Assembly (NCBI GenBank): GCA_000320545.1
Contig: ADNK01001110.1
Coordinates: forward strand, 1 to 64,000
Direction of reading: 5' to 3'
DNA: 64,000 nucleotides
DNA from: Bigelowiella natans CCMP2755
Lineage: Eukaryota > Protista > Cercozoa
Shown: one piece after another, positions 7,281 to 63,881 of the stretch
Numbering within the stretch: position 1 is the first letter of the stretch
Layout of the letters: the number at the start of each line of letters is the position of its first letter
Made by a program: the position numbers and the translations under genes
The notes under the pieces: model-generated
What the model saw: the letters and a program-made list of their open reading frames with translations, nothing else
Database searches by the model: none
Told to the model about the DNA's origin: nothing

Positions 7281-8273
7281 GTCGATCAGCACAAGCAAAC
7301 TCTCTTTCTTTCTTTCTTTCTTTCTTTCCAGTTGATTGCTGGAGAGGACACGGATGGGTTGGTGTCCCATGATCCACTCAACCGCTCTGATGGAAGAACA
7401 CCTTTCTTCCACACTTGATTCTTTCAATTGGGGGAGTGCCAGAGTGCGTGGACGAGTCAGCGCGTCCTGTGACCCTTTTGAATGATTGAGCATTGAAAAC
7501 ACTTCGTTCATTCATCGTGTTGAGGGCCAAATTCTCATCAATGTTTCAATGTCTCATTCGTTCTTCTTTTTCTGCCCGTTCGCGCGGTTGGGCAAAAGGT
7601 GGACAAGAGTGGCGTGCTGGCTCGCTGGATTGTCCCGTGATCGTTTTCAACCGCTCTTTTGGAATCAATTCGTTGATTTGTTGAAGAAAATCAAGCGTCA
7701 ACACGGCTGTTTGCGCCCAGTTGATCAATCGCAACCATCACGTCATGCGTGTTGTGCATGCTTTCATCGGTAGTGCACGCAACCTTGCTAGCATGCAATT
7801 TTCAGATCATGCATGATTGCTAGATTGGTCGTCACTCATCACACTCTCGCGCACACATGCTCGGGCAGCCACGTGTGCTCCAATCTGGCAATGACATCGA
7901 TCACATTGCAACACGCACACGTGCATGCGTGTCTGTGCACCACACAAGTGCATGCTAGTGCTAGCCTGATTGCATGTTGCGGGTGTTCGGTGCTGTGCGT
8001 GATTGCATTGGGACATGTCTAGATGTGTCTGTGGCTAATCGTACGTGTCATGCCAATGCTGTGCGTGCGCAGGCAAGGTGACATGCCAACATGCGGATCA
8101 TTGGATTGGACACGCTACGCGATAGCGCAAGCTAGCAGGGACTGCAGACTGCGCTGTGCGGTACGTGTGGCATGAGCTTGCTTTCTCGAAGCGATCGCTT
8201 TGGATTTGAAAGAGTTTTGCAGAGCAATCAAAATCAGAATCATATAGCTTTGAAATCGCCACGGCTCAATAAT

Positions 8274-8358
<85 letters not shown>

Positions 8359-8462
8359 TGTACATGTATCTACATTTGTGGATATTTGATAAAAACACTT
8401 TCCATTCGATTACGTGCAACAACAATTACTGACTACTCTAGTTTGCTTCAGTTTGAGTGCTG

Positions 8463-8834
8463 CTACTCTCCCTTTTTGTCCTCTACCGCTTCCTGGGAAG
8501 GAGATTTTGTTCCTGCGGTTTGCGTCCCTTCCTATATGAGGTACAAAATATGCTTAGAAATCTTTTAAAATCGCAGTTGAGTGCATTTCTTTAGTGATGC
8601 TATTGACCTGGTTTTCGGAAGCTTCAGCCCCCGTTTCTGCAGTTGCTGTAACCTTCCCGGAGTCTCCTTCCTCACTAGCCTCTACCTGATCAGCGATCTT
8701 TGCATCTGCATTGTCGCTAACTTCCTGAACCTTCTCGCCGATATCCTAAGGAAGATTTTGAACGTGTTAGAGAGAAAGAAGTAGGAGGAGGAGGAGGAGG
8801 AGGAGGAGGAGGAGGAGTAATGATTGCACTATCG

Positions 8835-8865
<31 letters not shown>

Positions 8866-9670
8866 AGTTTGCATCCTTGTCGGCATAATCACGCTCTGAT
8901 TCTTACTTCTGAAAAACTATCATAGCAACAGGATGATGACACACGTACGTACATCCATCACAGTAACAGCTCCGTTGGCGAGAGCTTGTATCCTTTCCTT
9001 CCTAGCGATCTCCAGCTACAATATAACCCAATTTATACACAATAACGCACAAAAGCCTTCGTGTTCAAATGTTGCGTCTATTTTTCTAGTGTTTGGACGT
9101 ATCCGAAGAAAAACGGGGGGAAGATGGACAAGGACGAGCATGCCATAAATACAGCTTGTACATATATATATGTGTTGTATTAACATGCTTACAGTGCAAG
9201 TAGAGTACTTCTCTTTCTCCTTATCATTACTTTCCCCCCTATCCCCAAAAACATTGCCAGCCCTCTCCACTTTACCGCTCGAAAGCCAACTTCTTCCAAG
9301 GGCTCATCTTCCTTCTGTCCGTATCTGCGAGTGACAGCGAACACAATTTTACACACGTAGACACACACTTCAATGATAATGTTTCAAACAAAATCATTCA
9401 ATTCCAAGCGAGGAAGAAAAGATCATAAGGATCCAGAAAAAGAGTTTCCTGTGCTATTCTCTACAAATGACCCGCATCATTGTCCTCCCATCATTATCAC
9501 CACCATCATCATTATCATCATTATCATCATTATCGTTGTCATCGATTGGTGCTCACTTCTTAGCCATTGCGTAGTAGAAGTCCATGTTCTCCCGCGCTCT
9601 TTGTACAAAATAACGCCTTGCATTTAGAATCGCGAGCAGATGCACACACACAGGCCCCCCCTCCCCCTCT

Positions 9671-9716
<46 letters not shown>

Positions 9717-10528
9717 CACACACACACACACACACACATACACACACATACACACACATACACACACTAAGACATCTACATACACTTTGAGCGAGGGGAA
9801 GATTTTATCCTGGTACTCAAGGCCGTAGTTGAATAGAAGAAGGCCTCCAGTCAGCCCCACTACTTTCCCTGCTCAATGCACACGGATCGACAGTGCACCT
9901 TACTTTACTTGGTAGCAGCATGACGGACGACATCGATATATGCAATGGTGTATGTGCTGCATGCACATGCGTCCTACCCCATAGCAGCGGCAAATCGGGC
10001 TCCTCGACCTTCGTTCCGAACACCTGAGAGAGTGATAATAGTCGGCGATAAGTGCATGGACGAGAGGAAAGGGGGGGTGGGGCATTGCTGGCCGGCAAGA
10101 CCCGTGAAGTTGTCGTGATTTCTGTTGTAATCTGCTAATAATGCATCAATTTGCTGTCGATGTCGTATGTATTACCGAAGTGTAGACCTTCCGCTGGAAA
10201 CCCTGGTCAGCTCCTAGTAACAGGGCAAATCGTGGAGGTGAGGAGAGCAACTCCAGCTCAGTGCTGGTTTTGTTCGCATCAATACTTGATAACGTATGGT
10301 ATTGTTTTTTTAAGGTAACTGCTGTGATATAACTGCACAATGCTGTTATGTTTTATTTGCATCTCTTTCTCTCTCTCTCTCTTTCTCTCTCTCTGTCACA
10401 ACCCCCCCCCCACGCACAAACATACACACACACACACACACACACGCACACATACACAATAACATAATATATTTATAAAATTATATCTGTTATTAGTTCA
10501 TGAACGTGTGCATACATGTTTGTGTGTG

Positions 10529-10575
<47 letters not shown>

Positions 10576-14146: not shown

Positions 14147-14184
<38 letters not shown>

Positions 14185-14266
14185 TATATATATATATATA
14201 TATATATTAATATATATACATGAACCAATATCATTTCATATGTAAACCTCGGAGTGGTGTGCGTGT

Positions 14267-14297
<31 letters not shown>

Positions 14298-15125: not shown

Positions 15126-15163
<38 letters not shown>

Positions 15164-15342: not shown

Positions 15343-16392
15343 TCCCAGCCGTGTGACTAGCGGCATTATACTAGCAACAAGTTTGTGTATGAATGCGAAA
15401 TTGACTAAAAAATGCATATCACGAGACCGTAAATAAGGCTGAATTCATGGCCTAAATTCGTCGAATCAGAGGCTAAGTGGTCGACGCGCGCATCTGATAC
15501 ACATTGTCTGTTGATACACACTACAGTATCTGCAATAGAATCTTGCATTTTACTCTTGCTATTGTATCGGTACGCTTTCCCAGCTAGAAGCGCTGGCTAG
15601 CTGGGCATTGCAAGACTTACGCCGCCATGCACATGCACGACCGGCGCCCATTCTAGATATCGCTGTAAACATGTCCACAGTCAGATCATGAATGAGGCAA
15701 ACTAGCATAATACTATTACTATGATATTTCAACAATCGGCATTTGCGTGATGTGCCACGACATGAACCGCATCAATTACAAAATGGGGGTGTGGCTGTGT
15801 ATCTCGGCGTCTTCTAAGCGACACAAGAAGGTGCTTCCCCCCCCCCCCCCAGAATTGATTAGATATTAGCTGATCCTACGACAAGTAATCGTCGGGAGCG
15901 CCATGTTCGGATCAACTTTATGAGATCCAGCGCATCTCCGCTTCACTCCAGCCGCTGAGGACATACTTAGATGCTGACTACACATCGTAGCATTTTAGCT
16001 AAATGTCACAGAGGATCATCCATGGATTTATGTATGTCTAGAGAGTTAAATAAGTGATGAAACATCGGAGACGCGACATCCAACGGCTAAGATTGCGCTT
16101 GTTTGCTCTACAGATTTCACGATGCCACATGTAGCTATAGATCAGCATGTGCGCTGGATTCAACTAGATAGCACCTGAACATGTAAGCTACTACGTATGG
16201 GACAATGAACACGTTGCTACGCTGTACAATGAGTCTGATGAGGAGAGAGGAAGTGTAAATTAAATCGCTGCCGCACACTCCTCTTCCTAACGCTCTAACC
16301 TATCACCACATTTGAAATGTTATGTATAATTTTCTAAAATTTTGACTCGCAGAATGTTGTCACTTTATCAGTGGAATCCTCTAGTCTCATAA

Positions 16393-18705
16393 TCAAGGCA
16401 ATCTATGTGTGAGCTTATTAGCCTTTGAATTCATCTTGAATTTGGGTTTTTCCAGGCCCAACAGTTTGCAGAACCTGCTGCACTTATGGGAATGGAAGAA
16501 TCTTTTCATGCCCTCTAGGCCTTTGTCCGTAGCTCCGTGTAAATGCCTTTTCCCGCTCTTTGAGTGGTAATGAATGCAAGGATCTGTAAGGAGGAAACCA
16601 TCATATCTGTTGTATGTGCCTTGCAAGTCGCAGACTAATTTCTTCCCCCCGGAGGCACAGTACGAAAAATGGGAGAAAGCTTGCGGTAATTCGTCAATGT
16701 CTTTTTCCTCCTCCGGAATGTTGTCGACGTATTTCAAGATGCTCTTCGAGACAGATCCATCATTGTTATTCCATTTGAGAAACTTACCTTCAAGAGTAGG
16801 TTCCAATAGCACCCAATTGTTGTATTCAGGCTCGTCAATGTGGTACACCTCGCAATCAAGGAATCGAATAATCCAGGATGGCTTTGATCCCAGCCTACGA
16901 TTAAAGGTTTTTGCAAACTTACCAGCCTCGATTTGGATTTTGAGACACTTTATTTGAAACTTTGAGGTTCCAAAGGTTTCCTCGTGTCGCCCTTCCTTGC
17001 ACACTAACCATGGCCCTTTCCTAATGTTAACCCCAGATTCTTTTTTAATACGGCAGGATCTGTACACATATCTCTCCATCCCTCTTGCAAAAGCAGTATA
17101 GTATGCAGCTATTCCAAGCTCCTCCCTGGGTTTAGTAATTGTCTTACGCGTGTCTATAAGTTCAAGACGATGACATTTATGATGACAATACCATCCATCT
17201 TCTCTAAACAATCCATTGCTTTTTGCCAGATCAATTTTCGCTTTCTGATCCACCTTCTTTTTCCTGTCTGTGAGACCTGACGAGCCTTCGGTGCGCAGCG
17301 TTGTCAGGGAGGTTGTGAGGGATGTGAGAGCTGTTTTTAAACCGCCAACCTGTAAGCCAAGCTTTTGAAAGGATCCGCGAGGAAGCTCGTTCGCCATTCG
17401 CCTCAGCACTCTGTACTTTAAATTCGGAGGGCCAAAAGCTACCGTCCCAATCATCATCCTGTCTCTTCCAAAGTAATCCCCAAGCTTTCGAACTCGCTTC
17501 AAAACCTCATTTTCAACATATTTCTTGACAGCACGGCGGCAAGCTATGACGTCCTCGCAATGATATGATGCTTCCCACTCTTGCCACACTTTGACTCCAT
17601 GTACACAATCTTCTAAGGTGTGATCGCTAGGTGCTCCATCGCTGAGGAAGACGAGGCATAGGCGGGTGGATTTGTGATAATCTGGAGAAAGGACCTTCAG
17701 CACCTTGTCCAGAGCGGGAAGGTAGTTTCCGTGGGATCTAGCTCTAGTTCTCTTGAGCTTCTCTAATACTCCCTGCAAATTGCTCTTCAAAGGCGTGCGT
17801 TCCAACACAACGCGCGCTTTATTCGACATCTGAATCAAGGAAACCACGGCTTCGGATTCCTGTGCAACTTTCAATTCCAACTGGGGCTTAAGAAACTCTG
17901 TTATAAGGCAATCGTAGACAGCTTCTGTTCGAGATTTATATCCAAGTACATCGCCTTTTCGCATGCTTCCACTATGATCTACAACGATCACGGTATGGCT
18001 TGAATAAGTCCCTGTACAGGGCTCAAGGTGTCGATCAATCACCACGCTGTCCTCATCATTTAAACGCCATGATGTAATCTCGTGCTTACTTGACTTATCC
18101 GTTACGAATACAACGCCTCTATATGTATACTTCCATCGAAGTTGGCCCTTCGGCCCTGGATTTGCTTCTTCTTTTCTTCCATATTTGACTGCAGCTTGTA
18201 GATCTTTGAATCCAATCCCGCGTTCTTGCCGTCGCTGGCGACCATGTGCGTGAGATATGACAGTGATATCTAAGGTTTTTAGGTCCTCTTCTTGTTTCAC
18301 TTCTCGTTCTTGTCTTCTTCGCTGACTCGAGGTCTTGATCTCATCAAGTATCTCCTTTTCGCGCACCTTTTTGCGAAAATAGGATACCATGGAAGGTGTT
18401 GTAAACTCGAGTTCTTGAAAGAGAGAAGACAGTTCGTCGACTGTGCCCTTTCGGAGAGTGTCATGAAGACGGTTATGAAGACGATTAAACTGGTGTTGCC
18501 CAGTTTCCGCAGATCTGATCAAACCCCGACTGTCGTATTTCCTTGTGAATCTATCGGGTGCTGGCTTGGATACTACATTTCTACTTCGAGCCTTAACGTC
18601 ATTTGAAAGCTCTGCGCCAATGATAGGGTCCGGCTCAATGAGTTCTATCCCACAATCAACACACGCACGGCGAATGATGTTGCCCACAGAAAGAATGATG
18701 CCCAT
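16393..18705 (-). CDS. Intronless vWA + alpha-kinase (MHCK/eEF2K family) protein with an N-terminal DUF4258-like domain
   Basis: MIDAS VVDHSGSM and FLSDGAP; alpha-kinase motifs LEPTLEGKFLKWNNNDG, PQAFSHFSY, LVCDLQG, LTDPCIH, HKCSRFC. First in-frame ATG is at 18705. Confidence 0.9.
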   Translation of the reverse strand: MGIILSVGNIIRRACVDCGIELIEPDPIIGAELSNDVKARSRNVVSKPAPDRFTRKYDSRGLIRSAETGQHQFNRLHNRLHDTLRKGTVDELSSLFQELEFTTPSMVSYFRKKVREKEILDEIKTSSQRRRQEREVKQEEDLKTLDITVISHAHGRQRRQERGIGFKDLQAAVKYGRKEEANPGPKGQLRWKYTYRGVVFVTDKSSKHEITSWRLNDEDSVVIDRHLEPCTGTYSSHTVIVVDHSGSMRKGDVLGYKSRTEAVYDCLITEFLKPQLELKVAQESEAVVSLIQMSNKARVVLERTPLKSNLQGVLEKLKRTRARSHGNYLPALDKVLKVLSPDYHKSTRLCLVFLSDGAPSDHTLEDCVHGVKVWQEWEASYHCEDVIACRRAVKKYVENEVLKRVRKLGDYFGRDRMMIGTVAFGPPNLKYRVLRRMANELPRGSFQKLGLQVGGLKTALTSLTTSLTTLRTEGSSGLTDRKKKVDQKAKIDLAKSNGLFREDGWYCHHKCHRLELIDTRKTITKPREELGIAAYYTAFARGMERYVYRSCRIKKESGVNIRKGPWLVCKEGRHEETFGTSKFQIKCLKIQIEAGKFAKTFNRRLGSKPSWIIRFLDCEVYHIDEPEYNNWVLLEPTLEGKFLKWNNNDGSVSKSILKYVDNIPEEEKDIDELPQAFSHFSYCASGGKKLVCDLQGTYNRYDGFLLTDPCIHYHSKSGKRHLHGATDKGLEGMKRFFHSHKCSRFCKLLGLEKPKFKMNSKANKLTHRLP

Positions 18706-19226
18706 GCTTTCTACACAAATACCTTGGCAAGAGAACTTCAAGGCTAGCCCTCAGAAAAGGATGCGGCGTTCGTTGGAACAAGTCACCGACGAGTTCTCAT
18801 CGGAAACTAAGTGCCTTTTGGCCACTAAGTCAAGATTTGGTGGACGTTCTTGCCTGCGCTCGCTGCTGAGAATACTCGAATACGGAAACTTTACCATAAG
18901 CTTTGCTGTCTTCATGTATGAAATGGCCTATATTTTTTATCTAGTTATGACTTGAGGCTTTGCCGCAGTCGGAAAAGTCAACTTACCTGCTGGAAACAAT
19001 ATTGTCGCCAGGTAATAGTCATCGGGATGTTTGTTGCTTGTTGCGATTGCAATTGCAGCTTGGAAGAAAGAACCGCTATGATGTTCTTACTTCTTGTTTT
19101 CTCGGCGGGACTAGATCTACACTTTTTTTTTACATGTTTCTGGGAAACTGGTACCAAATAAAGATGGTTTTCCATGGTTTTTGACCAAAATAAAAAATCG
19201 GTTGAACCGATTTCTCGATTTTTTGA

Positions 19227-19352
19227 GAAATCCTAGGAAATCCAGGGAAATCCTACTGGAAATCCTAGGAAATCCTGGAAATCCGAAATCCTCATAGATC
19301 TAGGAAATTCCTCGTTTCGAGCTTTTGATCCAAACGAGGAATTTCTCGATTT
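19227..19352. promoter_or_regulatory. Array of 7 GAAATCC motifs plus a 14-bp inverted repeat in a divergent promoter
   Basis: GAAATCC at 19227, 19237, 19247, 19259, 19269, 19278, 19285; GAAATTCCTCGTTT (19304-19317) and its reverse complement (19332-19345). Regulatory role is inferred from position. Confidence 0.5.
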
Positions 19353-20899: not shown

Positions 20900-20936
<37 letters not shown>

Positions 20937-21683: not shown

Positions 21684-21730
<47 letters not shown>

Positions 21731-23535: not shown

Positions 23536-24176
23536 ACTACTGCTAGCTGCTAAATGTTATTCCTGTACCACCGTGCTAGCATGTTTTCAGCAGATATGCT
23601 ATATTCTATAAGTAAAGAAACCGTCGTATTGATACCGCTATGCTTCTTAACATGCATGCATGGTTATATTCCAGGGCTGCGAGATGCATGCATCGCGGAT
23701 GTCTAGACATGTGCCCACAAGCATGCGTGATGAATATTGTAGATTGTCTAGAATTCCAGCGGCGCTTTAATGATGGTAGCTTACCAATTGCTAGCGAGGT
23801 CACTACACGAATGGACTAGTGCACTGATGATGTGCCTGCTGCTCGGTTCTGCTATATGGTCTTGCAGCAGTTAACGAGACATGCATGTACATGGCTAGAT
23901 GTGTCATTAACAACGCTTAAGTAGACATGAAGGCTGCTCTAGCTAGCTAGGCGCTACAGACGCGCAGCAGTGTATGCTAGTATGCGCGATACATGCGAAA
24001 CTTCAATGATGATTACTACAAAGTTAAAGGTGGCATGCAAGCACGCTGCCCATACTGACACATAGGGCAGGATCCATCCCCAAGTGTCCACCCATTAGAA
24101 TAAATATGCTTTCTAGTCTACGTGTGCACGCGTCTGCCTTCACGCAATATTCCGAATAGGTGCGACATGATCACTA

Positions 24177-25131
24177 TCATCCCTGGGCTGACAGCGTCTT
24201 GAATTTCTGCCGGAATCTGTACACACACACACACACACACACACAAACGGATTTTTATCATGAGTTGAGTGGGAGACAGGGACGCAGAGCAGGCAGGCAC
24301 ATATGATAGAGATGGAGAGAGGAAAAAGAGGGAGAAAACATATGACAAAGCCAAAAAGACAACAAACACCTGCAAGCAAGAAAGCTGAACGTGGGCGCAT
24401 AGTCGGGCGCTCCAGCCATCCCGTTGATTGCTGCTGCCAGCCTCGTGAGTAGCAGGTCCCAGTCGCGAAGCAAGATCCACGCGCGCCCTGCAGCAACCCT
24501 ATTATCTTTGACGATCGTTGCAAGTTGGCCGTGCTTGAGAAAGTCCAGCGCGTAGGCATTCAATAACGGCCCATCCCAGCAACAATCGTCTCCCTTTCCG
24601 ACTGCTTCTGCTGCTGCGACTCCCCCCTTCTCCTCCTTCCCAAGAACTCGGGCAGGGGTAGCTCCAGGGCCACCACCAACTACGCCAAGGCTATCGTATG
24701 TGCACACGACACCGAAGCCGGCGCTATCTACTGCTTCCATGGCCGACAAGAACACTGCCCCACCGTCTCCTCCGGAGAGTGAGGGGGCGGGTACATGTCC
24801 AGCAAGCTCAGAGCGAGAGCTCTCATGCGGAATGGCGGCTGTTCCAGCAGAGAGTTGTGAGAGAAGAGATGCGCCGCCTTGCCCACTGCCCTCTGGTCCG
24901 TCTTGCGTTGTCTTTTCCTCCTCGGGTTTCTTCCCTTTCGCGGGCGGGGCGGCGGGGAGCGCTGAGATCGGCAGACAGCCATACTGGACTGTTTTAAGCG
25001 CCGGCGAGAAGCTAGAAGAGGAACCGCCCGTGCTGCTGGAGCTCGAGCATGCAGCTGCGGGCGGCGCACCGTTCATGCTATTTCCTTCTTGCCGCCGCTG
25101 CTGTTGTTGGTGACCGCTATTACTGATACTA

Positions 25132-25163
<32 letters not shown>

Positions 25164-28100
25164 ATTCTTCTGCAGCCTGGCAAGGGCTTCCAGACGCTTC
25201 CTCTCTCGTTTAGAGAGCTTCTTCTGCTTGGCGCCCTTCTTGTTGTTGCGCCCGTTGCTGCTCGTGGTATGTGCAGCAGAGGGCTGCTGCTTCTCGCCGA
25301 GCTGCTGATTGTCCTTGGCGCCTACCGTTTCTCCGTTGATGGCGCTACCACCGGCATCACCACCATCATTACCCTTCCCTTCGCGCAAAGAGGAGGTGGG
25401 GACCATACTCAAGAATGCAGAGAAGGAGTCAGCAGCCAAGCCGAGCGTTTCCGTGTCGATCGCCCGGATCTCACTGGCGACTCGGCGGGGGAGCGGCGCG
25501 AGGAGAACCGTCGAGCTGGAGCGCTTGAAGTTGGAGCGCCTCACGTCTGCTGGGAACGGCACCCGTAAGAATAGGTGGCAAAGAACGAACATCAACCGCC
25601 GCGCGCTCCCGTCTGGATTGAGTTTAAACCTGGAAAGTAGCAGCGGTTAGCAGTAGCAGGAGGAGTAATAGTAGTGCTAGTACTACTACTGTTAGTAGTT
25701 GTTGTTGTAGTCACAGATTTTGGGTTAGTTTGTTGTTGATGATAAATGTTTGCTGTTGCTTCTTTCTTCCTCTTTTTCGTCTTCTCGTTATTGAGAAGAC
25801 CATACATTGATATCTAAACTCCCTTTCTCCCCCCCCCCCCCTCTCTCTTTCTCTCGCTTCGTTCTCCCCCCCCACCTTTTCGGCCCTCCACACACGCGTC
25901 GAAGCGTACCCGACCGCATCAGCGATACGAAGGCCATCGAGCTGCCAGCGCCGCCCGCAGCGTGGAGCGACGCCGCAACTCCTGCCAGCCCCACCGGCCG
26001 CGACTTCGGATCCGCGAGCCCCTGCCGCAATAACTGCTCTAGTGAGAAGCGGAAGGAGACGCGTGCCTGTTGCGACTTGATGTGTGCGCCCGGGAGCGAG
26101 AGGGGGGGGGTGAGGAGGATATTGGAGACCAGCTGCGTGGCCCTCTTGCGATCCCGCGCGTACGATTGGAAGAGTGCCATCCGGAGCGCGAGCGACGTGT
26201 CCGCCGCCGCGTATCGACCGCGCAGGGAGGTGAGAGGGGAGGTCATCAGCGACGCCACCTTCTGCATGGGGACGCCGAGGAAGGCGACGTAGCCCACGTC
26301 GTCGTGCCCCCTCCTTCCTGCACGGCCCGCCATCTGCCGGAAGGCCAAAGGGGTGAGCAGCGGCGAGTCGCCCAGGAACGCGCACGTGCGAGAAGGCATG
26401 TTCACGCCGACGGCGAGCGTCTTCGTGGCGATGACCACCTTAATGTGTTTCCCGCGAAACATCGTCTCCACCAGGTCCTTGTAGGAGCGGGGAAGCCCCT
26501 CGTGGTGCACGCCAACGCCGCGCCACAGCGCGCGGAGGAGCGGGTGATCGTTTGGCCACCCGGTAGCGTCGCGGAGGCGTTTCATCCAGAAGTCGAGGTC
26601 CTCGCGCGAGATTCGGTCGTTATCTGGGACGAAGGAGAAGCGCGGATCTACGTCCATCTGCAGGTCCAATTCGTCTTGATCGAGCATCGAAGCCGCGATC
26701 CGCGCGGCGTCCGCGCGCTGCTGCTCCGCCACGCGCGCGTCGTGGAGGCGAGCCTGCTGGTCGTGCGTGAGTTGCTTCTTCTGCTGGCCGCTGAGGGTCT
26801 TCTCCTTCTTGTTCCTCCGGCGATTTTGCATCTGCTTTACGAGCTTGGAGGCCTTGAGGGCCATCTTGGTCACGCGCCGCTTCTCCGCCTCGCCGCCTTC
26901 CCGCTCCGACGCGGCCTTCTCTAGACGCTCGAGGGTCTCCACGATCCGGAGCGCCAGCGCTTCGCACAGGTTGGGGTCCAAGCAGAAGGCCACGCAGGGC
27001 AGCTTGTCCTCGCGGGCCAGATCGACGAATAGCGGCAGCACATAGCGGCTGACGAAGTGCCTGGAAGCAATGCTTTCCTTACGCTCCGAGATTGCCCCAA
27101 GCCGGTCGCGTACGGGAGCTGCGAGCTGGTCGAGTACTAACTCGGCAGGGCCCCTCCCCTCCCCTCCTCCTCGTGTGTTCCCAGTGCCAGACATGAGCTT
27201 TTCAGCCCACACCCCAAACGCGGTCTTGATTTTCTCCCCATATTCGTGCGCCGCGTCTCTGCCTATGTACGCCTTCGCCCGGAAGTAAGCGGAGGGTTCC
27301 AGCGGCCTCAGCCCCTTGAGTGCTGCTACTTCGCTGCTGCCACTGCTGCTCGCTCCTCCGCTCGCAGACTGGCACATGTGGTCATACAGCACGATCGAGT
27401 CCCGAGGGGAAAACTCCATTGTCTTTGGGATGGCGATGGTGCTGCCGCTGTTGCTGCTGCTGGCCGTCTCTCCGTTCTCCTTGTCACCCGCCCCCCCTCC
27501 GTCCCTTCTCTCCGCAAAGTCGTGCGCCGCGCCGAAGGCCACCGCAGCGAGGGGGTGAAAGGGGAGGAGGCCGGATGGCAGCAGCTTCGGGGCACGCTTT
27601 CCGGCCTGCTTAAGCAGCATGCGCTCGGCGTTAGTCTTGGGGGATACGATGCCGTGCTTGTAGGAGAGCAGGAGGCGGTCGCGCTCGAAAGCTGGTAGGT
27701 ACACAGCCTTCTCGAGGTCGGCCCATCGCTTGGTGTGCACGATCAAGGCAACTTCAGGGTTGTCAGTCGGGAACGGCGAGGAGGAGGACGAAGAGGCCGA
27801 CTCCTCGCCTCCGTTATTGTCTCCCCTCCCCCCACGCCTCCCGCCTTTCCTGCCTCCGCCCTTCTTGCCTCTTTTGTTGGAGGGGGGGGTAGTGGAAGAG
27901 GACGAGCCGCCGTCCGCAGCGGCCCTCTCCTGGTCGAAGTTGGGAGTGCCGAGCTTAGCTGTTCGCTGTCGTGCTTGCTGAAGCCACGAGTGGAAAGCGT
28001 GCGGGTTTCCGACGGTAGCGGACAACGCCAGGAACGGAGCTGGGAAGGCCGCCAGAAGGCGCTCCCACGGCCCCCCGTCTTCCCCGTCGAGGCTATGAAC

Positions 28101-38093: not shown

Positions 38094-39090
38094 GAGTGTG
38101 CGAGTGGCAAGTGAGCACCGTCATTCAGCGTGATTTATAACGATGCGGTGCGGAGGTATTGTGCTATTTAAGAGTCTGATCTTCGCTCTTATCCTTTCTT
38201 GTCTGCCCCGCACACAGGCCTTGTTAGCAAAGCCAGGTGTGGGATAATCTGCTGTGAGTGCTGCTACTCTTGATACAAACAAAGTATAATATGCACAGCG
38301 CTGAGCCGAGATCGTAGTTGCTCTTACGTCATCTCGGATGGATGATAGATGGAGAATACTACGATTTGATGCACAAATATCTAACTTCATTCGCCTAAAA
38401 GTCTAATAACGATTTGTATGAATAAGTTACATATCCTTTCCCTACCACACGTTTCTCCATTAGTTCTGTTATTGCATATTAATTCACGACGACAACTGCT
38501 TGTGATAAAATCTTGCATGCACAGCAGGCGCAAATCTAGTTTGTTCTGTTGCGAATGCAAATGAATAACGAGCCATCATCAGCACATTGAAGTCAAGTGT
38601 GATCAGCGCCGCACAATATTGCCCGCCTGCGCTACTGTTGCTTCTATTATTGCTGCTGATCATGGAATAGAATTTGAATGGACCAACTCTTAAAGATAGC
38701 GATAACAAGAACAGTTTGTAATAGTTCTGTGAAAGGCGTTGCGCCTAGCAGACGATGAGCGTGCTTGCAGCTATACTTAATTACAAGCAAATACTGCAAT
38801 AACTAGACAAGCTCTCGTTTTGTCAGTAGCCCAACTAGCCAACTTACCGTCATAATAGGTCTTACATTCCATCATGCAGTCTATACGAAGGCTAGAAGGT
38901 GATGAATGCTGTCAAGGTATAACACCAACATGTAGCTATAACATTGTACGGCTCATATCGTATGAGTACAGGACCGTCTTGAAGCAGTCGTAGAATTACA
39001 GCAGCAGAGACCAGCAGAGACCAGCAGGAAAGCGACGATATCGGCGTTCCATGAATCTCTAGAATACTACCGTCGACTTTCGGTCGATTA

Positions 39091-40518: not shown

Positions 40519-41233
40519 TTCAGCGAGTGGGGCCGAGGGAGCCAATCCTTCTTTTGAACGTTATTGGTGTACACCCCCTCGTCAAGTACATCCGCCCTTT
40601 CGGAGCTGAGCCTCAGCCTGATGAGATCGACAACTATAATCAGGAAAAAATTTAAGCCAAAAACATCCTATAAAATATAATTAAGTATGTCGGAAAAATG
40701 GCAAATGTGAAGATTTTCCAGCGTCACAACATACGTATAAGAGACAGAAAAGCCAGGATTTTCCCCGTGCGACAATCAAATTAGATGTCAACTTGAGGTG
40801 AATCCTCGAGGATCTAAGCGTCTCCGGATCCAGCATCATCCGGCGTCAGTGCGGGAAATTTCAATGGGCGACGCACTTTGGGGAGTCTGAGGGCAAAACG
40901 GAATGTGAGTACCGTTAAGAATTACTGGGTAAACAAAAGCGAGTACACTTTATTTTGTAGTGAAAGGGTGAAGCCATTCACGGGTTTCGCTCAATTCCAC
41001 CGCCATCTGAAGACACCGTGGAGTCACGAATTGGGCACCATCGTTGCAAGTCAAAAAACGAGCAGCGTGCCATGCACATTGCTAGATTGCGTCTGTCATG
41101 AGACTTCCATCACAAATTTAGCCGGCGGTGAACGGAAGCAGCTACAAAATGCTTCCATTTGCAAGCTGTCTGTCTGATCACATGTTGCCTACGTGGAAAG
41201 TGTTTCGAGAAGTTGGCACCTTTGTGGTTGTCC

Positions 41234-41559
41234 TGTTGCGCGTAAGGTGTTCACAGGCCGAGGCGCTACGTGCACAAGTAGGCAGGGGGGGGGAAAGGCA
41301 CGTTTGCTTCCTTTTGAAGAGTTGTGTTTATTTTTATTAAAGATTATATTTTTATTAAATCGTGCACTGCGTAATCATTCGCGAAGCTTTCGCGAATGCC
41401 GCCGCACGTGGGGCAGCACACTTCCGGTGTGCTGCCATGAGTCCCGCCGGAACCCACGTGCCTATGCTGTATTAATATCTACGTTATCTATATTCTATAT
41501 CCGCGACAACCCCTTTGTTGTCGCACGTGACTTGTGCCCGCGTAGTGGTACGCGCTACA
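41234..41559 (-). repeat. 3' LTR (326 bp)
   Basis: TGTTGCGCGTA...TACGCGCTACA (11-bp terminal inverted repeat, 1 mismatch); identical to 46624-46949. Confidence 0.97.
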
Positions 41560-41567
41560 CCTCCCCC
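41560..41567 (-). other. Polypurine tract GGGGGAGG
   Basis: Immediately precedes the 3' LTR on the minus strand. Confidence 0.85.
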
Positions 41568-41610
41568 AAGTCACGTTGCTCCTTCCTTCCTTCCTTATTC
41601 CCTTAGACCT

Positions 41611-44600: not shown

Positions 44601-46584
44601 TCCGTAGCTCGGTAGGTGTAGGTAGCTTGTTGTCCGCTAGGTCCATAAACTCTAACGCATTAACGCTTGACTCAGAGGTCCACTCGTCAAGCCGTATCAT
44701 GTTCTGGCTGATGGTCCTGCCTGACTTCTTTGGCAACTTAGCAAAGTATATCTTGTGATTGTAGAATGATATGATCCCCCCTAATTTTTCTAGGGCATCC
44801 TGTCCGAGGAGTAGTTCCATGGATAAAGTCATGGCTACTCGGGTCTTGATTTGGGTCTCCGCGTCGCTGCCAGGTATCTGTAGCTTTAGCATTAGCTCAC
44901 CGACGGTCTTCATGGAAGAGCTTCCGTCTGCTTGAGCATATTTACGTTCTTTCTTAGTCACTTGATCCAATAGTCCTAACCTTCTTACTGTGCTTAGGCT
45001 TATGAAGGACTTCGGCATGCTGCCACTATCCCAAAGGGCAGGTAGTTTCTTGTAGTCTCCGTAGCTGTCTTTAACTTTAACCTTGGTCATAGCAACTTTG
45101 ATAGTCCTGTTAGCGTCTTCGTCATTAATGTTGCATACTCCTAAGTTCTTTATGTCGTCTAGGGTCATGGGCTTGTCTTGGTCCTGCGTTGCTGGTACTG
45201 CTGTCTTCGTCGGCGCCTGCTTAAGGTGATCTAATATTCCGTTTATCTGCTGCTGTATAGCATTGATACTGTTCTGCTTTTTGTTCTTATATTTATTGTT
45301 CTTCCCGTTGTTGCTGCCTTGCCATTTGCTGTTGTTATATCCTTGTCCTCTGCCTTTCTTTCTCTTTAACTTCTCGTAGTGTTCGTTGAGCTGCCTGATC
45401 GTCATCCTGGGTCGTCCTTCTTTCCTGTCTCTGCAGTCTTTAGCGGTGTGTTTCCCTTTACGTGAGCAGTATCCGCAACGTCGGTTACCTTCCCTGTCCT
45501 TGTACCAGTCTCGCTGCGGCTTAATAGCGTTAATGTTTCCTATGCCAGGTACCTTAGGGCTGGTAAACTTGCGGTCCTGCTCCTGCTCGCGTAGGGATAT
45601 AGCCTGCACTGCTGCCTCCATCGTGGTGTAGCCTTTCTCCGTAACGTAAGTGGATTCCTTTATCTTTAACTTGAACTCTTCAAACCTTGCCTGATCATCA
45701 CCTGTGTTGTAATTAAAATCATGTAGTTCGTCGATCATATCCTGGAAGCGCGTGGCAAAGTCTCTAACAGGTTCTCTCTCATGCTGCATCATTGCTCTGT
45801 ATTTTCTAATAGCCTGGGGTAGGGAGTTAGCATCCTGTTCATTTACAAAAGCCTTCATTATCGCCTCAACGTCTCGTAGCCCACTAACTGTAGTGTGTAT
45901 TTTCTCTAGCTGCCTGATCCGGGTCCTGCCTGTCTCGTAAAGGTCCATGGCTTGCTTTATTATAGCTAGCCATTTGAGCTTGTCGTTTTCGGTGGGGTTA
46001 GGGGTAAAGTCGCAGAGTATACTCCTAGCGTTCTTCCACCACCTCCTTGCCTCACCTCTTTTCCCGTTGTATTTCGTTATCATAACCGGTGCTGTTTTAA
46101 CAGACATGAACTGGGTGTTCCGCTGTACCGGCTGCTGCTGCTTGACGGTGCTCTGGGTCGTCCCCCGCGAGGCGCCCAGACCCCCGTCGTTCCTAAACAA
46201 AGCTGCCCACTCTGGAGGTAAGTCTGCTTCGTAATCCATGATGTCCTGCATGATAGCTGCCCAAACATCATGTGTCTGATACTTGTATTCTATCGATACT
46301 TTCAGTTTGGCGTAGTTGCTCGCCCTGGGTCGCAAGGCTCGTAATGCCATTACGACCTTCTTGCTTTCGGCGGCCACGTCCTCGTCGTCCGCCTCGTAGA
46401 AGTTCTCCAGTGCCTCTGCTGCTGCATCTGCTTTCTTAATCCCGGGTGCTGGTCCCGGCGGTGCCTGTGGAGGTGTTCCTCCTCCTTCCTTAGCGTCCGT
46501 ATCGCCCTTCCTTTCCTGTTTCTGCTCGTGCCCTTGCACGGCCTGCGAGCCAAAGTCCTGCTGTTCTTCTAGCTGCTGTGACAT
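41611..46584 (-). CDS. Gag-Pol polyprotein, 1657 aa (Gag, protease, RT, RNase H, integrase, C-terminal MTase-like domain)
   Basis: Zn knuckle CGYCSRKGKHTAKDC; protease ALWDSGS; RT LDKNESYMQ, FPYGL, YVDD; RNase H TDWS, TDHKPL, ADYFSR; integrase H..H..YYWP..C.C, QIDV, VDNE, SNSKVER. Confidence 0.97.
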   Translation of the reverse strand: MSQQLEEQQDFGSQAVQGHEQKQERKGDTDAKEGGGTPPQAPPGPAPGIKKADAAAEALENFYEADDEDVAAESKKVVMALRALRPRASNYAKLKVSIEYKYQTHDVWAAIMQDIMDYEADLPPEWAALFRNDGGLGASRGTTQSTVKQQQPVQRNTQFMSVKTAPVMITKYNGKRGEARRWWKNARSILCDFTPNPTENDKLKWLAIIKQAMDLYETGRTRIRQLEKIHTTVSGLRDVEAIMKAFVNEQDANSLPQAIRKYRAMMQHEREPVRDFATRFQDMIDELHDFNYNTGDDQARFEEFKLKIKESTYVTEKGYTTMEAAVQAISLREQEQDRKFTSPKVPGIGNINAIKPQRDWYKDREGNRRCGYCSRKGKHTAKDCRDRKEGRPRMTIRQLNEHYEKLKRKKGRGQGYNNSKWQGSNNGKNNKYKNKKQNSINAIQQQINGILDHLKQAPTKTAVPATQDQDKPMTLDDIKNLGVCNINDEDANRTIKVAMTKVKVKDSYGDYKKLPALWDSGSMPKSFISLSTVRRLGLLDQVTKKERKYAQADGSSSMKTVGELMLKLQIPGSDAETQIKTRVAMTLSMELLLGQDALEKLGGIISFYNHKIYFAKLPKKSGRTISQNMIRLDEWTSESSVNALEFMDLADNKLPTPTELRKKNPGKTIRQITELLDKTPPADDWDIDKGKKYINKILNEKYSDITKPTTKPSSKLTPVKIELKKGYEECIINDPEHRRPEADWEKIEWQINEWAKEGKIEPSNSPWNVRHVLAKKPTYPFFRLAHNFIRHNRVIKRIQTPTPRIDDVIEHVIGYKYYSSLDKNESYMQTPIHKTSRPITAFSSRHRKWHFVVFPYGLSISGDAFSSQNYRAYTHDGMASVLWVFVFVYVDDDIICTNTVVAQIFLLENIFIRFAHFGFTIRLQKCTFLATRIKWCGYYLEQGRITPNPEKVAALQQAPKPKNAKELKSFLQTAAWILRRFSPTYARTAAAFTTAYRKENSVGLSFAKVWAKAGLDAHFDNLIKLCSNTLLNAKLDTTRPATLWTDWSKLGMAAVLTQDQQIIRVWGRACTAAEAKYSPTKGEYKAMTEAQRKLRYYLLSVPSFTLMTDHKPLLGIDRKLEAPNDEYAAMRADTEEFRDKRTVVYAPGDKQLADYFSRLFEKKVPTQVTPMVNAITFEDGDFLPEPEELQHLQEHLDKYKHKHEVLSDRIYVYTNNVRRTYVPRRTRGALLFTAHGPAHVGENHITALLYHYYWPYKLKEIRTYLRGCRCSSLKAAGVATKESSKSRASKKIKARNFLDIVQIDVYKYDGYHYLTFVDVATGKCWVKKIIKVNVAKKNKGLYKQRLTNCYRTWESELQAIPDEVSINKIPKKLHVDNETSLLQLPHPNIDASPVYYAQSNSKVERLHRTLANLSRINSTTPDKIQGLVNDTFTSGGGIKDKEREEGDDNDDDTESEDEKVPYDGRVLKEGQYVRAKVNLRSRNKQDPFWGGVAKVTERKGRKQYYIYDGNRVTLRHISHLKNYDIGEKLLEDVKVNPTVWERAMPCLGPRPKFDVEYGNNKVRVNDDWRMKIVYLGYPGLRNMERVAMKIKDGKYQLLYLAVPDLPFEHWYKVLGDLDAEGWYGHEPKDEGEFWVSDKGDKVREESITWWLVKFRKR

Positions 46585-46600
46585 TGTTAGTCAAATCGTT

Positions 46601-46618
46601 TCCCGTGTGTGGAAGCCA
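46601..46618 (-). other. Primer-binding site TGGCTTCCACACACGGGA (18 nt)
   Basis: Starts 5 nt after the 5' LTR. Its complement ends ..TCCCGTGTGTGGAAG-CCA like a tRNA 3' end (possibly Glu/Asp type; not verified). Confidence 0.8.
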
Positions 46619-46623
46619 AAGGT

Positions 46624-46949
46624 TGTTGCGCGTAAGGTGTTCACAGGCCGAGGCGCTACGTGCACAAGTAGGCAGGGGGGGGGAAAGGCACGTTTGCTTC
46701 CTTTTGAAGAGTTGTGTTTATTTTTATTAAAGATTATATTTTTATTAAATCGTGCACTGCGTAATCATTCGCGAAGCTTTCGCGAATGCCGCCGCACGTG
46801 GGGCAGCACACTTCCGGTGTGCTGCCATGAGTCCCGCCGGAACCCACGTGCCTATGCTGTATTAATATCTACGTTATCTATATTCTATATCCGCGACAAC
46901 CCCTTTGTTGTCGCACGTGACTTGTGCCCGCGTAGTGGTACGCGCTACA
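46624..46949 (-). repeat. 5' LTR (326 bp)
   Basis: Identical to 41234-41559; followed on the minus strand by the PBS and the ORF start. Confidence 0.97.
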
Positions 46950-47379
46950 GTCCACCGGTCGCACACTTTCAATGTGCTCATCTTCATGCATGAAATGCTC
47001 GAGCAAACGGACCAGCATCACATTCTGCAACTGCCACCTGCGATGCACCTACAGAGCTCCTATATCGCATGCATGTAATTGATGCGTTCATGTTTTCTAC
47101 TGAACATTTCGCACATGAGAGTAGCGACGCGTGAATGTGATAAGCACAATTCTGTCTTATCTGAGTCGCAGAACGAGGCATAGCCAGTGCTGTGCATTCG
47201 CAGTATGCACCGTATATCTCATGCACTTCGCTCGCTACTGTACACTAGTACATCAAGCGAATTCGCATTAATTCAGGAGGTCAAAGCATAGATGTGAACG
47301 TGGACTTTGAGGCGTGATTGTTATTCTTACCGACGTGTAGCACATTGCGAATTGCAGCAACGCATACACTTCACATTAG

Positions 47380-48884: not shown

Positions 48885-48915
<31 letters not shown>

Positions 48916-50535: not shown

Positions 50536-50574
<39 letters not shown>

Positions 50575-52072: not shown

Positions 52073-52112
<40 letters not shown>

Positions 52113-54512: not shown

Positions 54513-55507
54513 CAAGCAAGGAAGATTGATCTTCTAAATCAGCATGGCAGTTTGAGATGTAAAGCGAGGTTGCATGCACCGTGAAGCCCACACCTTGTTT
54601 GATTGCATCGCATGTTTGGACTGATGAGGAGGTGACGCAGCTCGTTTTTGCCTCAGCAACCCTTTTCCGGTGACACACACACTGACACAGCACAGTGCTC
54701 TAGCGCTGCTCACAACACACATGCAAGTGTCATTTCAACCAACCATGCCAGCATGCCATTCTCAATGAACGCAAACAACATGACGAATGTGTTGCTCACC
54801 TGTCATGAACAAACAAGCGTCAACCCACAACACGTGCCGTGCATTCATGCAAGCCACGCTGCAATGCCACGGCGGGAACTGGCACGGTCTAGGGGTGGGT
54901 GTGTCCCGCACGCATTGTATGCAAAAATGAACATTGCCACAGATGTTGCTCTTTGCGATCACATCCTGATGAAAATGCAGACTGTCGGATTGCGTCATTG
55001 CCACCGACGCAAACGAACTGATTAGCTGCAGCTACGCGCAGGCGAGCCCACATTGTCAGCACGGCAGCATCAGAGCCCGGATGTGCATGTGCAGGTCGTC
55101 AGCGACTGCGTTGTCGTGTGCTGAGTGCGAGCTAGCTGGCTAGCTGGGACACCGTGGTTGGTGCGTCCCAATCTGAACAATGAGCTAGTGAGACTCGCTG
55201 CAAAGTCTGGAAGTTGCAAGCAAGTTGCATGGTTTTCGATTGACCATTCACCTGCAGCAGGAATGACGATCCATCATGTGTGGATGAGCTGATGAACTTG
55301 CAGGTCCAGAGGTGTCCATCAGAGCACAACGGCTTGAAAAGCATGCATCCCGCCAGACGGGTTGGTTTCAAGCACGCACCACACTGCAAGCGTCAAATCG
55401 AGGCACACACACGTGTGAGCTGCTCAGAGCAGCGGCTGATTGGGGTGCAGTTCAAACAACAAAGTCTGAGCAAGCGTCACTCACTTTGATGAGGAAGATC
55501 GATTGAT

Positions 55508-56002
55508 TGTTGCGCGTAAGGTGTTCACAGGCCGAGGCGCTACGTGCACAAGTAGGCAGGGGGGGGGAAAGGCACGTTTGCTTCCTTTTGAAGAGTTGTG
55601 TTTATTTTTATTAAAGATTATATTTTTATTAAATCGTGCACTGCGTAATCATTCGCGAAGCTTTCGCGAATGCCGCCGCACGTGGGGCAGCACACTTCCG
55701 GTGTGCTGCCATGAGTCCCGCCGGAACCCACGTGCCTATGCTGTATTAATATCTACGTTATCTATATTCTATATCCGCGACAACCCCTTTGTTGTCGCAC
55801 GTGACTTGTGCCCGCGTAGTGGTACGCGCTACACCTCCCCCAAGTGATTCGTTTTGCGTCCACCTCGACGTCCAACGCAACGCGATGCACGATGCACACT
55901 TGAGTTGCTAGCAAGCTGGACGCATCTCTAACCTTATCTCCTTTGTCGCTTACCCAGAACTCACCTTCGTCCTTAGGTTCGTGTCCATACCAGCCCTCTG
56001 CA
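55508..56002 (-). mobile_element. Third LTR copy (55508-55833) + PPT stub + 79-bp unrelated DNA + 78-bp pol 3' fragment
   Basis: 55508-55845 matches 41234-41571; 55925-56002 matches 41654-41731. Confidence 0.92.
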
Positions 56003-60789: not shown

Positions 60790-61209
60790 ACATTTTTCAA
60801 TGACAATGAACACAACAAGTGACAACTAGCTTGACAATGACAAGACCACATTTCTAAAGTGCGTTTCTAGGTTGCAAGACATTGAACATTGAACATTGAA
60901 AGAAGCATCAATGCAAACTGCATGCTGGCAGGAGCAAGAACCACATGGGAGACATGCACAAACACGTGCCAGCGCCTCATCAAAAATCATTGCGAGGACT
61001 TGTCAGCACCCTGAGAACAATGCCAGAATCACAATGAGAACAACGAGAACAATGAACAATGTGCAATGAACAATGATGATGAACCACATTTCAATGAGAA
61101 CAATGATGACAAACTAGCAAACTGCATTCTAGCATTTCCAAAATGCAACAAGACATTTGCAGTGCACGAAACGCAGTGCCTCGAACTAACTTTAGTGAGG
61201 TCTAACTAG
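60790..61209 (+). mobile_element. Degenerate interspersed repeat related to 6981-7280, with AACAATG subrepeats
   Basis: Reciprocal alignment with 6981-7280; ends in an imperfect hairpin CCTC..ACTAA/TTAGT-GAGG followed by CTAG|T. Confidence 0.6.
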
Positions 61210-61529
61210 TGAAACTGTGACCAGAAGGAATCAAGAGTGGCATTCTGGCCATTCCTCCATTCCTAGATTCATTTTCTTTCGTGCCTTTTCTTTGCCAACC
61301 CTGTTGGTGTGACGTTTGCAGTTCCAACCTGCATCTTGGATGTAGCGACAAAATCGTTGAGCGGTTGCGAGAAACATTAGAAGAAATACAGGGCATTTTT
61401 GGAAAAATTCGTATCGGAATAAATAGGGAAGAAGAATCGGGCATGCACAAAATCCATCGTCGGACACTCCTTTTTTTTACTCATACCCCGAGATACCTAC
61501 CATCCCTTCGAGCAAGGGAAAAACTGCAA

Positions 61530-61863
61530 CAGCTGGGAAGATGAAAGACGGAGAAGCCAAGGCAAAAGCACTTCTGGATTCTGGAAAGATATCGCAATCG
61601 ATCTACAAGCACATGGTATCTTCCATCCGTGAGGAAAAAGAAAGATCAGCTGGGAAGATGAAAGACGGAGAAGCCAAGGCAAAAGCACTTCTGGATTCTG
61701 GAAAGATATCGCAATCGATCTACAAGCACATGGTATCTTCCATCCGTGAGGAAAAAGAAAGATCAGCTGGAAAGATGAAAGACGGAGAAGCCGAGGCAAA
61801 AGCACTTCTGGATTCTGGAAAGATATCGCAATCGATCTACAAGCACATGGTATCTTCCATCCG
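61530..61863 (+). repeat. About 2.85 copies of a near-identical 117-bp (39-aa) coding repeat
   Basis: Units start at 61530, 61647 and 61764. Confidence 0.95.
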
Positions 61864-63070
61864 CATGCCACAGCAAATAGTGCAGCAGCAGCCTCAAGGT
61901 GGTGATGTCGCCGTGCAAAAAGGCGCTGCCCCTTCCCCACAGGAACTCGAAGAACGAATTGGAGAACAGTTGTACCCTATGATCGAGCAGTATGAGCCTG
62001 AAAAAGCAGGAAAAATCACCGGTATGCTTCTTATGATGGACAATCAGGAACTTCTTCACCTTATGGAAGACCAAAATAGTCTGGTTGCTAAAATCAATGA
62101 AGCACTTGCCGTTCTCAACGAATTTCCTGAAGGAAAGACGTCGCAAAAATTACGCACACAACATTTAACAAGGTCGACACAAAAGAGTGACGAGAATGAG
62201 AGGGCAGAGGCTGCCTTCCGCCACGCGCTCGATGAAATCTGTCCAGAAAACTTCCACATAATTCTAGAGAAGGTGGTGTCAGGGACGGAGGAGGACCTGA
62301 ATATCGATAATAAGGTCAAGCTGGACATGGCTGCTAAACTCACCTTCGAAAAGGCCATTGCAAAATCGGTGTTCTGCAAAACCTACGCCGAATTTTGCTG
62401 GAACCTCTTCGACAAATTAGGCAAATTCCATCCTGAGTCTGGTAAGAAATGGGATAAAACGCAAAACAACACCGGTGTCAAACCGTACGATTTCCGCAGG
62501 CCAATATTAGCACGGTGCCAGAAGGAATTTGAAGCATACACATACACCAAGAAGGAAAATGCCGACTCAGAAGATGATAAGGATAAAAAAAGGAAGAGGT
62601 TCCTGGGTACTATCAGGTTGATTGGAGAATTGTATATCAAGGGAATGATTGCTAATAACATTATCATCAGTTGCTGCCATGTCCTTATTGACGGAGGAGG
62701 TAAACCTAAACCTGACTTTATCCAAGCTCTGTGCAAGCTCTTAGAAACCGTAGGCAAGAAAATGGAAGCGAAACTGCTTGCCTCGCTAAACAACATCTTC
62801 GAGATACTTAAAAAGCTCACTCAGGATCCTGCACTTGATTTCCGTCATCGGCTCATGATTCAAGACACAATAGATCTGCGGAAAAACAAGTGGATCCCTC
62901 GCTTTAAAGAGGAGAAGGCCATGACGAAGAAGAAGTTTAAAAAGATAGGGGCACGGGAAGGGCAGAAGGCTAGGAATCGCGCTATTAAGTTGAATCACAA
63001 AGCAAAGGTGTTTGTCCTCAGATCTAAAAGGTTAGCTTTCATCGGCAAGCCAAATCATTTTCCATTCTAA
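61541..63070 (+). CDS. MLLE(PABC)-MIF4G fusion protein with N-terminal repeats and a C-terminal PAM2-like motif
   Basis: MLLE: [35 protein letters not shown]. eIF4G-type MIF4G: [73 protein letters not shown]. An upstream exon is possible. Confidence 0.85.
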
Positions 63071-63881
63071 CTCGTCGGATGGAAATGGCTTCTAGCCTTT
63101 GTGGCTCTAAGCGTGTATTCCACGCTTGTATAGCCTTTGTGGCTCCAAGATGGCATTTAAGAATTGCGGACGTAGATGTCCCTTCCTCCGTCGTTCAGCT
63201 TGTAACGGATTTTGTGCACAATTGATTTTGACGCTTCCACAATCTCCACGGGGTTGCCCTTCACACCCGAGAGTGAAAATGACCACAGCCTTCTGTCGTC
63301 CAAACTGTGATGACATCCATGCATTCTCACAACGCGAGTCAGCTAGTCAGGCTAGCGTCATTGATGTCCACAACCCCATTTTTCAAATCCCACGCTAATT
63401 GGTTTCACTGTCTGAGCTGTTGGTGTGTGCTTGCGTCGCGCCAGACCATCTGAGACACGTGCCATGCTAGCATGCCTAGATGCTCTGTGCACTGTGCGCA
63501 TATGTGGTCTAGATGCGCAAAACAAATGTGCGACACCTGTCTAGCTGTGCACCTCTAGACCTTGAAACTTGAAACACGCGGCAGCGGAGACAAACAGACA
63601 CAGCATGAGCGCTGTGGCCGCTGCTTTGCACAGCCACATCAGGATGACCACTGAAAACATTCAATCACTTCATGCTCGGCTCACATGCCGTCTCACCACA
63701 TTGCAATGACGTCACGTTGCGCTGTGGTTCAGTGGCGCTGTGCTAGCGATACATTGTGTGATGTGCCAAAGCGGCTAGTCACGTTGTTCCAATCTAGCGA
63801 TAGATGCATGGCGTGTCTAGCTGTTCTCGGTAGTGTTGCACCAAACAGCTGCTGATCGTCACACATGCAAGCTGGACATGG

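Follow-up and report, generated by a model that had tools for sequence, protein, structure and literature searches.

Among the described cut-and-paste transposons, the Tc1/mariner elements such as Sleeping Beauty leave excision footprints of the form TA, a few terminal bases and TA, which derive from the joining of short (3-nt) 3ʹ overhangs (PMC7827188), and the Sola elements generate 4-bp target-site duplications (TSDs) and have variable terminal sequences (PMC10741241). Here we describe a short insertion signature of Bigelowiella natans CCMP2755, studied in a 64,000-bp stretch of contig ADNK01001110.1 (positions 1 to 64,000, hereafter the window) and across the assembly, in which the palindrome CTAG is flanked on both sides by the same 4-mer (XXXX-CTAG-XXXX, hereafter scars). 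The scars resemble the Tc1/mariner footprints in layout, with two TSD copies enclosing a few bases that would be retained terminal bases. However, their TSD is 4 bp (rarely 5 bp) and variable instead of TA, a single palindrome dominates the core, they are fixed in the genome by the tens of thousands, and no DDE_3 transposase was found there. By the 4-bp TSD and the variable ends, Sola appears to be the nearest known superfamily, although the TSDs reported for Sola2 are AT-rich (AWWT) (PMC3627910), unlike the [C/A]NN[G/T] of the scars; no account of Sola footprints was found in our literature search. The searches also found no paper describing a CTAG insertion with a 4-bp duplication, in agreement with the original prediction, made from the window sequence alone, which knew of no described footprint of this form, and the text of the B. 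natans mutation study does not mention CTAG (bioRxiv 10.64898/2026.01.13.699255). The CTAG scar is apparently an undescribed insertion signature, most likely a transposon excision footprint of a new variety, with the element still to be found.

We scored every CTAG of the window by the identity of both flanking 4-mers. Identical 4-mers flanked 20 of the 185 CTAGs, and duplications of 3, 5, 6, and 7 bp were present at 3, 0, 2, and 1 of them, respectively; a short GAAATCCTAG tandem array at 19227-19284, which is not a scar, is the source of both 6-bp cases. All 19 predicted 12-mers were located at their coordinates, and a 20th site was found at 23939, where CTAG occurs three times in a row. When every core of 0–8 bp was scanned with duplications of 2–9 bp and microsatellites were masked, the CTAG core with a 4-bp duplication gave by far the strongest signal in the window (19/180, p=1.3e-16, against a background of 0.7%), with every other 4-bp core and duplication length far behind. 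In C2862, a contig independent of the window, 200 kb held 508 CTAGs, 52 of them flanked by identical 4-mers (p=4e-41). Further, genome-wide counts were taken with chosen flank 4-mers on the assembly of 91,405,885 bases in 3,736 contigs. ACAG-CTAG-ACAG occurred 1,064 times (534 and 530 by orientation), whereas two controls, the reversed pattern with a GATC core and a pattern differing in one flank base, gave 8 and 33 occurrences, respectively. With no second core enriched in the window, in C2862 or in the genome-wide controls, the objection that other tetramers might be equally enriched fell away. Scaling of the motif counts gave about 25,000–29,000 scars in 91.4 Mb. CTAG scars are a real, genome-wide insertion signature.

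Comparison of repeat copies revealed filled and empty alleles: the filled ones had gained precisely CTAG and a second copy of the 4-mer, and the empty ones had a single 4-mer and no CTAG at the site. Such pairs were observed for repeat copy L002 versus the window near 63730, L039 versus L046 (89% identical), L012 versus C2862, and the window versus L006, in which the sites filled at 61110 and 61125 are empty. One target copy had thus turned into two, with a net insertion relative to the empty allele, and the sizes of indels between repeat copies peaked at 8 bp (12 cases, compared to 2 at 6 bp and 1 at 7 bp), bearing out the predicted 8-bp insertions between repeat copies. Only the scar and empty states were seen per site among near-identical strains, and no strain polymorphism of scars was detected in the DNA runs and transcripts compared, all of which were near-identical to the assembly or shared its scars.

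An 8-bp tandem duplication or slippage in CTAG- and CATG-rich DNA, with CTAG outliving the loss of TpA, might also produce such sequences. The scar tracts are rich in CTAG, CATG, and TGCA, and some stacked arrays could represent slippage growth. However, 19 of the 20 window sites fall below two periods of the 8-bp unit, two full periods being reached at 55136 alone, which indicates that they are not tandem duplications; the seven sites held to parse solely as 4 bp, CTAG and 4 bp do so, with a period-8 run of exactly 12 bp each. The empty alleles and the two genome-wide controls (8 and 33 versus 1,064) also refute slippage for single scars, leaving it highly improbable as a general source. CTAG is in addition a restriction and linker motif, and the scars might have been created by fill-in and linker ligation during library construction, or in assembly. 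We give this a practically negligible probability, since the sites are also present in transcripts and in independent Illumina assemblies: contigs from two other DNA runs (2021 and 2025; X1 and X2) are identical to positions 62903-63880, spanning five sites, a diverged RNA-type contig of X18 also has the scar at 63339, and two transcriptome contigs (L050 and L051) include those at 38831 and 38888. The concern that the inserts would be missing from raw data was thus not borne out. Scars are also common to paralogs of 74% identity and decay by point mutation. Contigs of other species holding homologues of queuine tRNA-ribosyltransferase (TGT), about 30 kb, contained no scar, which is not informative on chlorarachniophytes.

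The window scars sit in spacers, mostly behind stop codons or gene 3ʹ ends, with gene limits taken from a rough reading of open reading frames (ORFs). The first are ATTG-CTAG-ATTG (7816..7827) and ATGT-CTAG-ATGT (8015..8026, parsing only as 4+4+4), followed by CTGG-CTAG-CTGG (15593..15604), about 800 bp beyond the stop codon of an intronless vWA/alpha-kinase gene (16393-18741, minus strand). About one of the 20 sites would be expected by chance, as had been estimated, and the likeliest is TTAT-CTAG-TTAT (18937..18948), with an atypical target in a divergent spacer. CTAG-CTAG-CTAG (23939..23950), missing from the earlier list, is a scar at a CTAG target, and TATG-CTAG-TATG (23973..23984) is a spacer scar downstream of a DEAD-box helicase gene (minus strand). 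CCAA-CTAG-CCAA (38831..38842) and AAGG-CTAG-AAGG (38888..38899), the two found in transcriptome contigs, belong to the 3ʹ untranslated region (UTR) of a TGT gene (39091-40545, minus strand). ATTG-CTAG-ATTG (41078..41089) is located 156 bp from a Ty3-like insertion, with TACA-CTAG-TACA (47241..47252) on its opposite side. CTGG-CTAG-CTGG (55136..55147) is stacked behind another CTAG, with a period-8 run of 17 bp, and TGAG-CTAG-TGAG (55181..55192) lies downstream of a kelch-domain ORF (plus strand, ending at 54512). The related repeat copy L006 is without the scar CAAA-CTAG-CAAA (61110..61121) and has one CATT and no CTAG in place of CATT-CTAG-CATT (61125..61136). For ATTC-CTAG-ATTC (61259..61270), the CTAG is also present in L006 and L043, and this site reads as an older scar common to repeat copies or a coincidence, not as private to the window copy. 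A typical scar tract extends from 63071 to 64000 (63071..64000); these 930 bp contain 12 CTAGs, with five perfect and three one-mismatch scars, and the site near 63730 that is empty in the window and filled (CTGT) in L002. The perfect scars are TCAG-CTAG-TCAG (63339..63350), behind a MIF4G/MLLE ORF (61541-63070, plus strand) and ungapped in the X1, X2, and X18 contigs, CATG-CTAG-CATG (63463..63474), ATGC-CTAG-ATGC (63472..63483), nested in the preceding one, and CTGT-CTAG-CTGT (63537..63548) and ACCT-CTAG-ACCT (63551..63562), both common to paralog L002, which has a further scar stacked at the former. Together, genes (introns included) and a long terminal repeat (LTR) element cover about 52 kb of the window, with some 100 CTAGs but no perfect scar among them.

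The duplicated 4-mers had been thought to vary freely, but they showed a strong palindromic target bias instead. Measured on 140 scars with the local background as reference, the 4-mer was [C/A]NN[G/T] in 75–79% of scars compared to 26%, and CNNG in 31–41% compared to 6%. The target was palindromic, with G or C preferred just outside and CTAG and CATG as the leading 4-mers. The duplication length was constant at 4 bp except in about 5% of cases with 5 bp, a class for which the single 5-mer counted gave 41 occurrences versus 0 in the control. Longer cores were rare and non-random. CATG-CTNNAG-CATG occurred 61 times versus 3 in the control, with CTATAG making up 25 of the 50 cases listed and possible TpA-mutated forms of CTATAG a third; the commonest core variant with ACAG flanks was CTAGCTAG, and the set with AGAT flanks was noisier. 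Single sites had been hit repeatedly, with scars stacked at 8- or 9-bp spacing, and about 80% of scars had a neighbor within 300 bp, compared to 17% at random. The tracts were rich in CA/TG and poor in CC/GG, with a rho of 0.38 between scars and CA+TG excess.

We propose, with a probability of roughly two in three, that the scars were left by excision of a cut-and-paste transposon, one with CTA(G)...(C)TAG ends, a 4-bp TSD, and self-annealing 3ʹ overhangs. Each XXXX-CTAG-XXXX would be an empty donor site. The transposase would insert with a 4-nt stagger (5-nt in a few percent of cases) and duplicate 4 bp at a palindromic target of roughly (G/C)-[C/A]NN[G/T]-(G/C), best CTAG and CATG; the 4-bp duplication and the target bias of this step are direct observations. 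Excision would then cut 3–4 nt inside the CTA(G) ends, as Tc1/mariner enzymes cut inside theirs, so that each flank would presumably keep a CTA(G) 3ʹ overhang. Because ends of CTA or CTAG would make these overhangs self-complementary (TA/TA or CTAG/CTAG), end joining would nearly always yield CTAG, giving one dominant product, and rare blunt joins may account for the minor products CTATAG and CTAGCTAG, both of which were observed. A haploid lineage would have no homologue for erasing scars, and every scar would itself be a preferred target; scars that recreate good targets would lead to stacking and clustering. By calculation, a few elements with about 1e-4 events per genome per generation over about 1e8 generations would leave 25,000–29,000 scars, and the donor would by now be rare, eroded or lost. 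The palindromic fixed core in balanced orientation (534 versus 530) and the specificity of flank identity (1,064 versus 33 with one flank base altered) count in favor of the footprint reading, as do the filled and empty alleles, the palindromic target, the repeated hits at single sites, the 5-bp class, and the CTNNAG cores. A cut-and-paste footprint with CT..AG termini, as originally suggested, is the best explanation of the insertion and duplication observed, while the element that it implies was not found.

Several points weigh against this proposal. CTATAG and CTAGCTAG may instead have arisen by later duplication of TA or CTAG within a scar. Footprints of end joining are usually more varied than a single product at about 90%. 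The predicted terminal inverted repeat element starting with CT, ending with AG, and flanked by a 4-bp TSD was not detected, intact or decayed, when the approximately 350 kb holding the 140 scars were searched both for inverted repeats between TSDs and for repeat ends in common that start with CT. In addition, the transposase families that are present have other ends where readable. Scans of the genome matched PF13359, DDE_1 (C2661, C2845, C1948, and C570), and hAT (three ORFs; C2149, C2351, and C2036), and gave no match for piggyBac, DDE_3, DDE_Tnp_1, DUF6589, Mutator-like PF20700, rva_4, and TnpB, several of these being weak negatives with silent controls, or for DUF7869, an unverified guess at the Sola transposase.

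Individual candidates compared with the scars as follows. In C2862, a 7.4-kb inverted pair lacked both a TSD and an ORF for a transposase, and resembles a gene duplicated in inverted orientation. The IS5-subgroup insertion sequences have a 4-bp TSD and a CTAG-like target, but the IS5-related (PF13359) elements of B. natans look Harbinger-like, with GGC-type ends where readable; PIF/Harbinger showed no ends able to give CT+AG, the alignment breaks of PF13359 copies reading ...CAATGCC(C) or ...AACGCT (one end per family). At least five Harbinger-like families (L033-L047) are present, strongly depleted in TpA and some with open frames of 350–530 codons, and the scar density within these elements is near the genome average. 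For piggyBac, a scar is left, the target is not TTAA, and PF13843 had no match (a weak negative). hAT elements would give an 8-bp tandem TSD with a flank-derived center, whereas the duplication here is only 4 bp and the core is fixed. Tc1/mariner/pogo duplicate a TA target, in place of the variable 4-mer seen here. A young pogo-like DDE_1 element, best read as a TA-target element, has one readable end, ...TTCCTA(CG), not ...AG; its two copies (L048, C2661:200580-204035, and L049, C2845:4546-8001) are 99.4% identical, with a perfect 59-bp hairpin upstream of the ORF, and about six related ends occur in the genome, with flanks beginning CG after TA. Helitrons usually have CTAG at the 3ʹ end, but they make no TSD, insert between A and T, and cannot yield the symmetric 4+CTAG+4 product. 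Capture by telomerase was considered as well, the telomere repeats being TCTAGGG in the nucleomorph and TTAGGG in the host; it was rejected because the insert is fixed and symmetric and TTAG/CTAA cores are not enriched.

The lack of a donor with CT..AG ends in the approximately 350 kb is one argument for an alternative in which no element takes part. A host or domesticated enzyme would make a 4-nt staggered break, like that of topoisomerase II (Top2), in spacers behind genes, the overhangs would be filled, and a fixed CT, CTA, or CTAG would be added to both ends prior to joining, so that B. natans would have, or have had, a programmed mutator writing CTAG into breaks. The enzyme could belong to a TpA-hypermutation defense, the insert shifting the frame and placing TAG on both strands; B. 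natans has an unexplained TpA hypermutator, and the location of scars in CA/TG-rich spacers mostly behind gene 3ʹ ends, with none in the approximately 52 kb of genic DNA, also fits. Top2 breaks followed by end joining have a 4-nt stagger and yield 4-bp duplications (bioRxiv 10.1101/2020.05.03.075358), but without inserted bases, whereas the scars always have CTAG inserted. Plain 4-bp duplications were just mildly raised in the tracts (5.3 versus 3.5 per kb), the near-average scar density inside Harbinger-like elements fits poorly with targeted inactivation, and TpA depletion outside CTAG was uncorrelated with scar number across all windows. To our knowledge, no enzyme adds a fixed palindrome to both ends. 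We consider this explanation, the second option of the original prediction, unlikely.

The Ty3-like insertion of the window (41234-46949, minus strand) is a young LTR retrotransposon with identical 326-bp LTRs and the 4-bp TSD GTCC, located within a scar tract and without scars inside. Its family comprises about 330 near-identical copies (657 LTR ends) with 4-bp TSDs and a 5-bp spacer before the primer-binding site; other copies lie at C2862:71479-77191 and 142131-147846. A truncated copy at 55507-56002 retains one perfect 3ʹ LTR and about 170 bp of internal sequence, with about 90 bp near the polypurine tract swapped for unrelated sequence. All four copies examined were in scar tracts, and for two of them a perfect or one-mismatch scar lay no more than 5 bp away. 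The shared 4-bp TSD and spacer tracts would be in line with scars being by-products of an LTR-retrotransposon or virophage integrase, left by abortive integration events or by the transfer of short ends after processing. However, CNNG followed the target-side LTR ends in 5 of about 334 cases (1.5%), compared to 31–41% of scars and 6% of the background, indicating that the Ty3-like element, with this opposite target preference, is not the scar source. Moreover, its ends are TG..CA, the bases beyond them (ACCTT and GG) are unable to give CT+AG, and it does not excise. The element has its niche in common with the scars, but not its chemistry. An older, different integrase family is a conceivable source; overall, we regard an integrase by-product as quite improbable.

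One-mismatch scars exceeded chance by one third of the perfect count, corresponding to a per-site divergence of about 4%, and a mild excess of CCAG cores was seen as well. Among the published B. natans de novo indels, 0/21 over 3,132 generations were CTAG+4 insertions (bioRxiv 10.64898/2026.01.13.699255, Table S2). At 1e-4 events per genome per generation in steady state, only 0.3–0.4 new scars would be expected in this period, and the result therefore neither shows nor excludes present activity. With this mean age and 0/21 de novo indels, the description of the element as very active was not supported as a present-day claim. One de novo insertion in the same table matches the window LTR end at 12/12 bases, and other entries have the LTR-like ends AACA, TACA, and ACA (bioRxiv 10.64898/2026.01.13.699255). 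As these indels end like the Ty3-like LTR, several are probably new Ty3-like insertions that were mis-called, and activity of the element in culture is probable.

Other repeats and genes were noted in and around the scar tracts. A dispersed repeat family with AACAATG runs (6966-7080 and 60877-61299) occurs in scar tracts. At 63570-63673 lies a member of an abundant repeat of about 100 bp (463 candidates), with its end ...CATCCGTCTCA beside (TA)n or (CA)n and with RNA-run reads on both strands; inverted pairs in L005 suggest that it is a transposon end targeting TA microsatellites. A 650-bp foldback palindrome is located at L009:799-1446. The MIF4G/MLLE ORF is intronless and encodes three 39-aa repeats, an MLLE domain, and a MIF4G domain; at equal depth, the DNA runs also contain another copy of about 95% identity. 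The TGT gene is also intronless, and its homologues are algal proteins mixed with proteins of Chlamydiae and Babeliales at 58–61% identity, a mixture that suggests a bacterial origin.

About one CTAG in ten in the B. natans genome is a scar, and about 0.2 Mb of DNA has been added in this way, concentrated in 3ʹ UTRs and spacers, which explains the palindrome-rich islands behind genes. New here are the controlled genome-wide counts, the target consensus, the minor products, the estimate of age and rate, and the exclusion of the active retrotransposon. As young CTAGs mask TpA loss, scars need to be modeled in studies of TpA hypermutation in B. natans. If the scars are footprints, they would record cut-and-paste transposition with unusual completeness, as a tally of excisions and not of surviving copies, and would predict an undescribed transposase with a 4-bp TSD, CTA(G) ends, and nearly single-product excision, the target preference and chromatin niche of which would be readable from the genome alone. 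If no donor exists, the scars would represent a new kind of mutational machinery.

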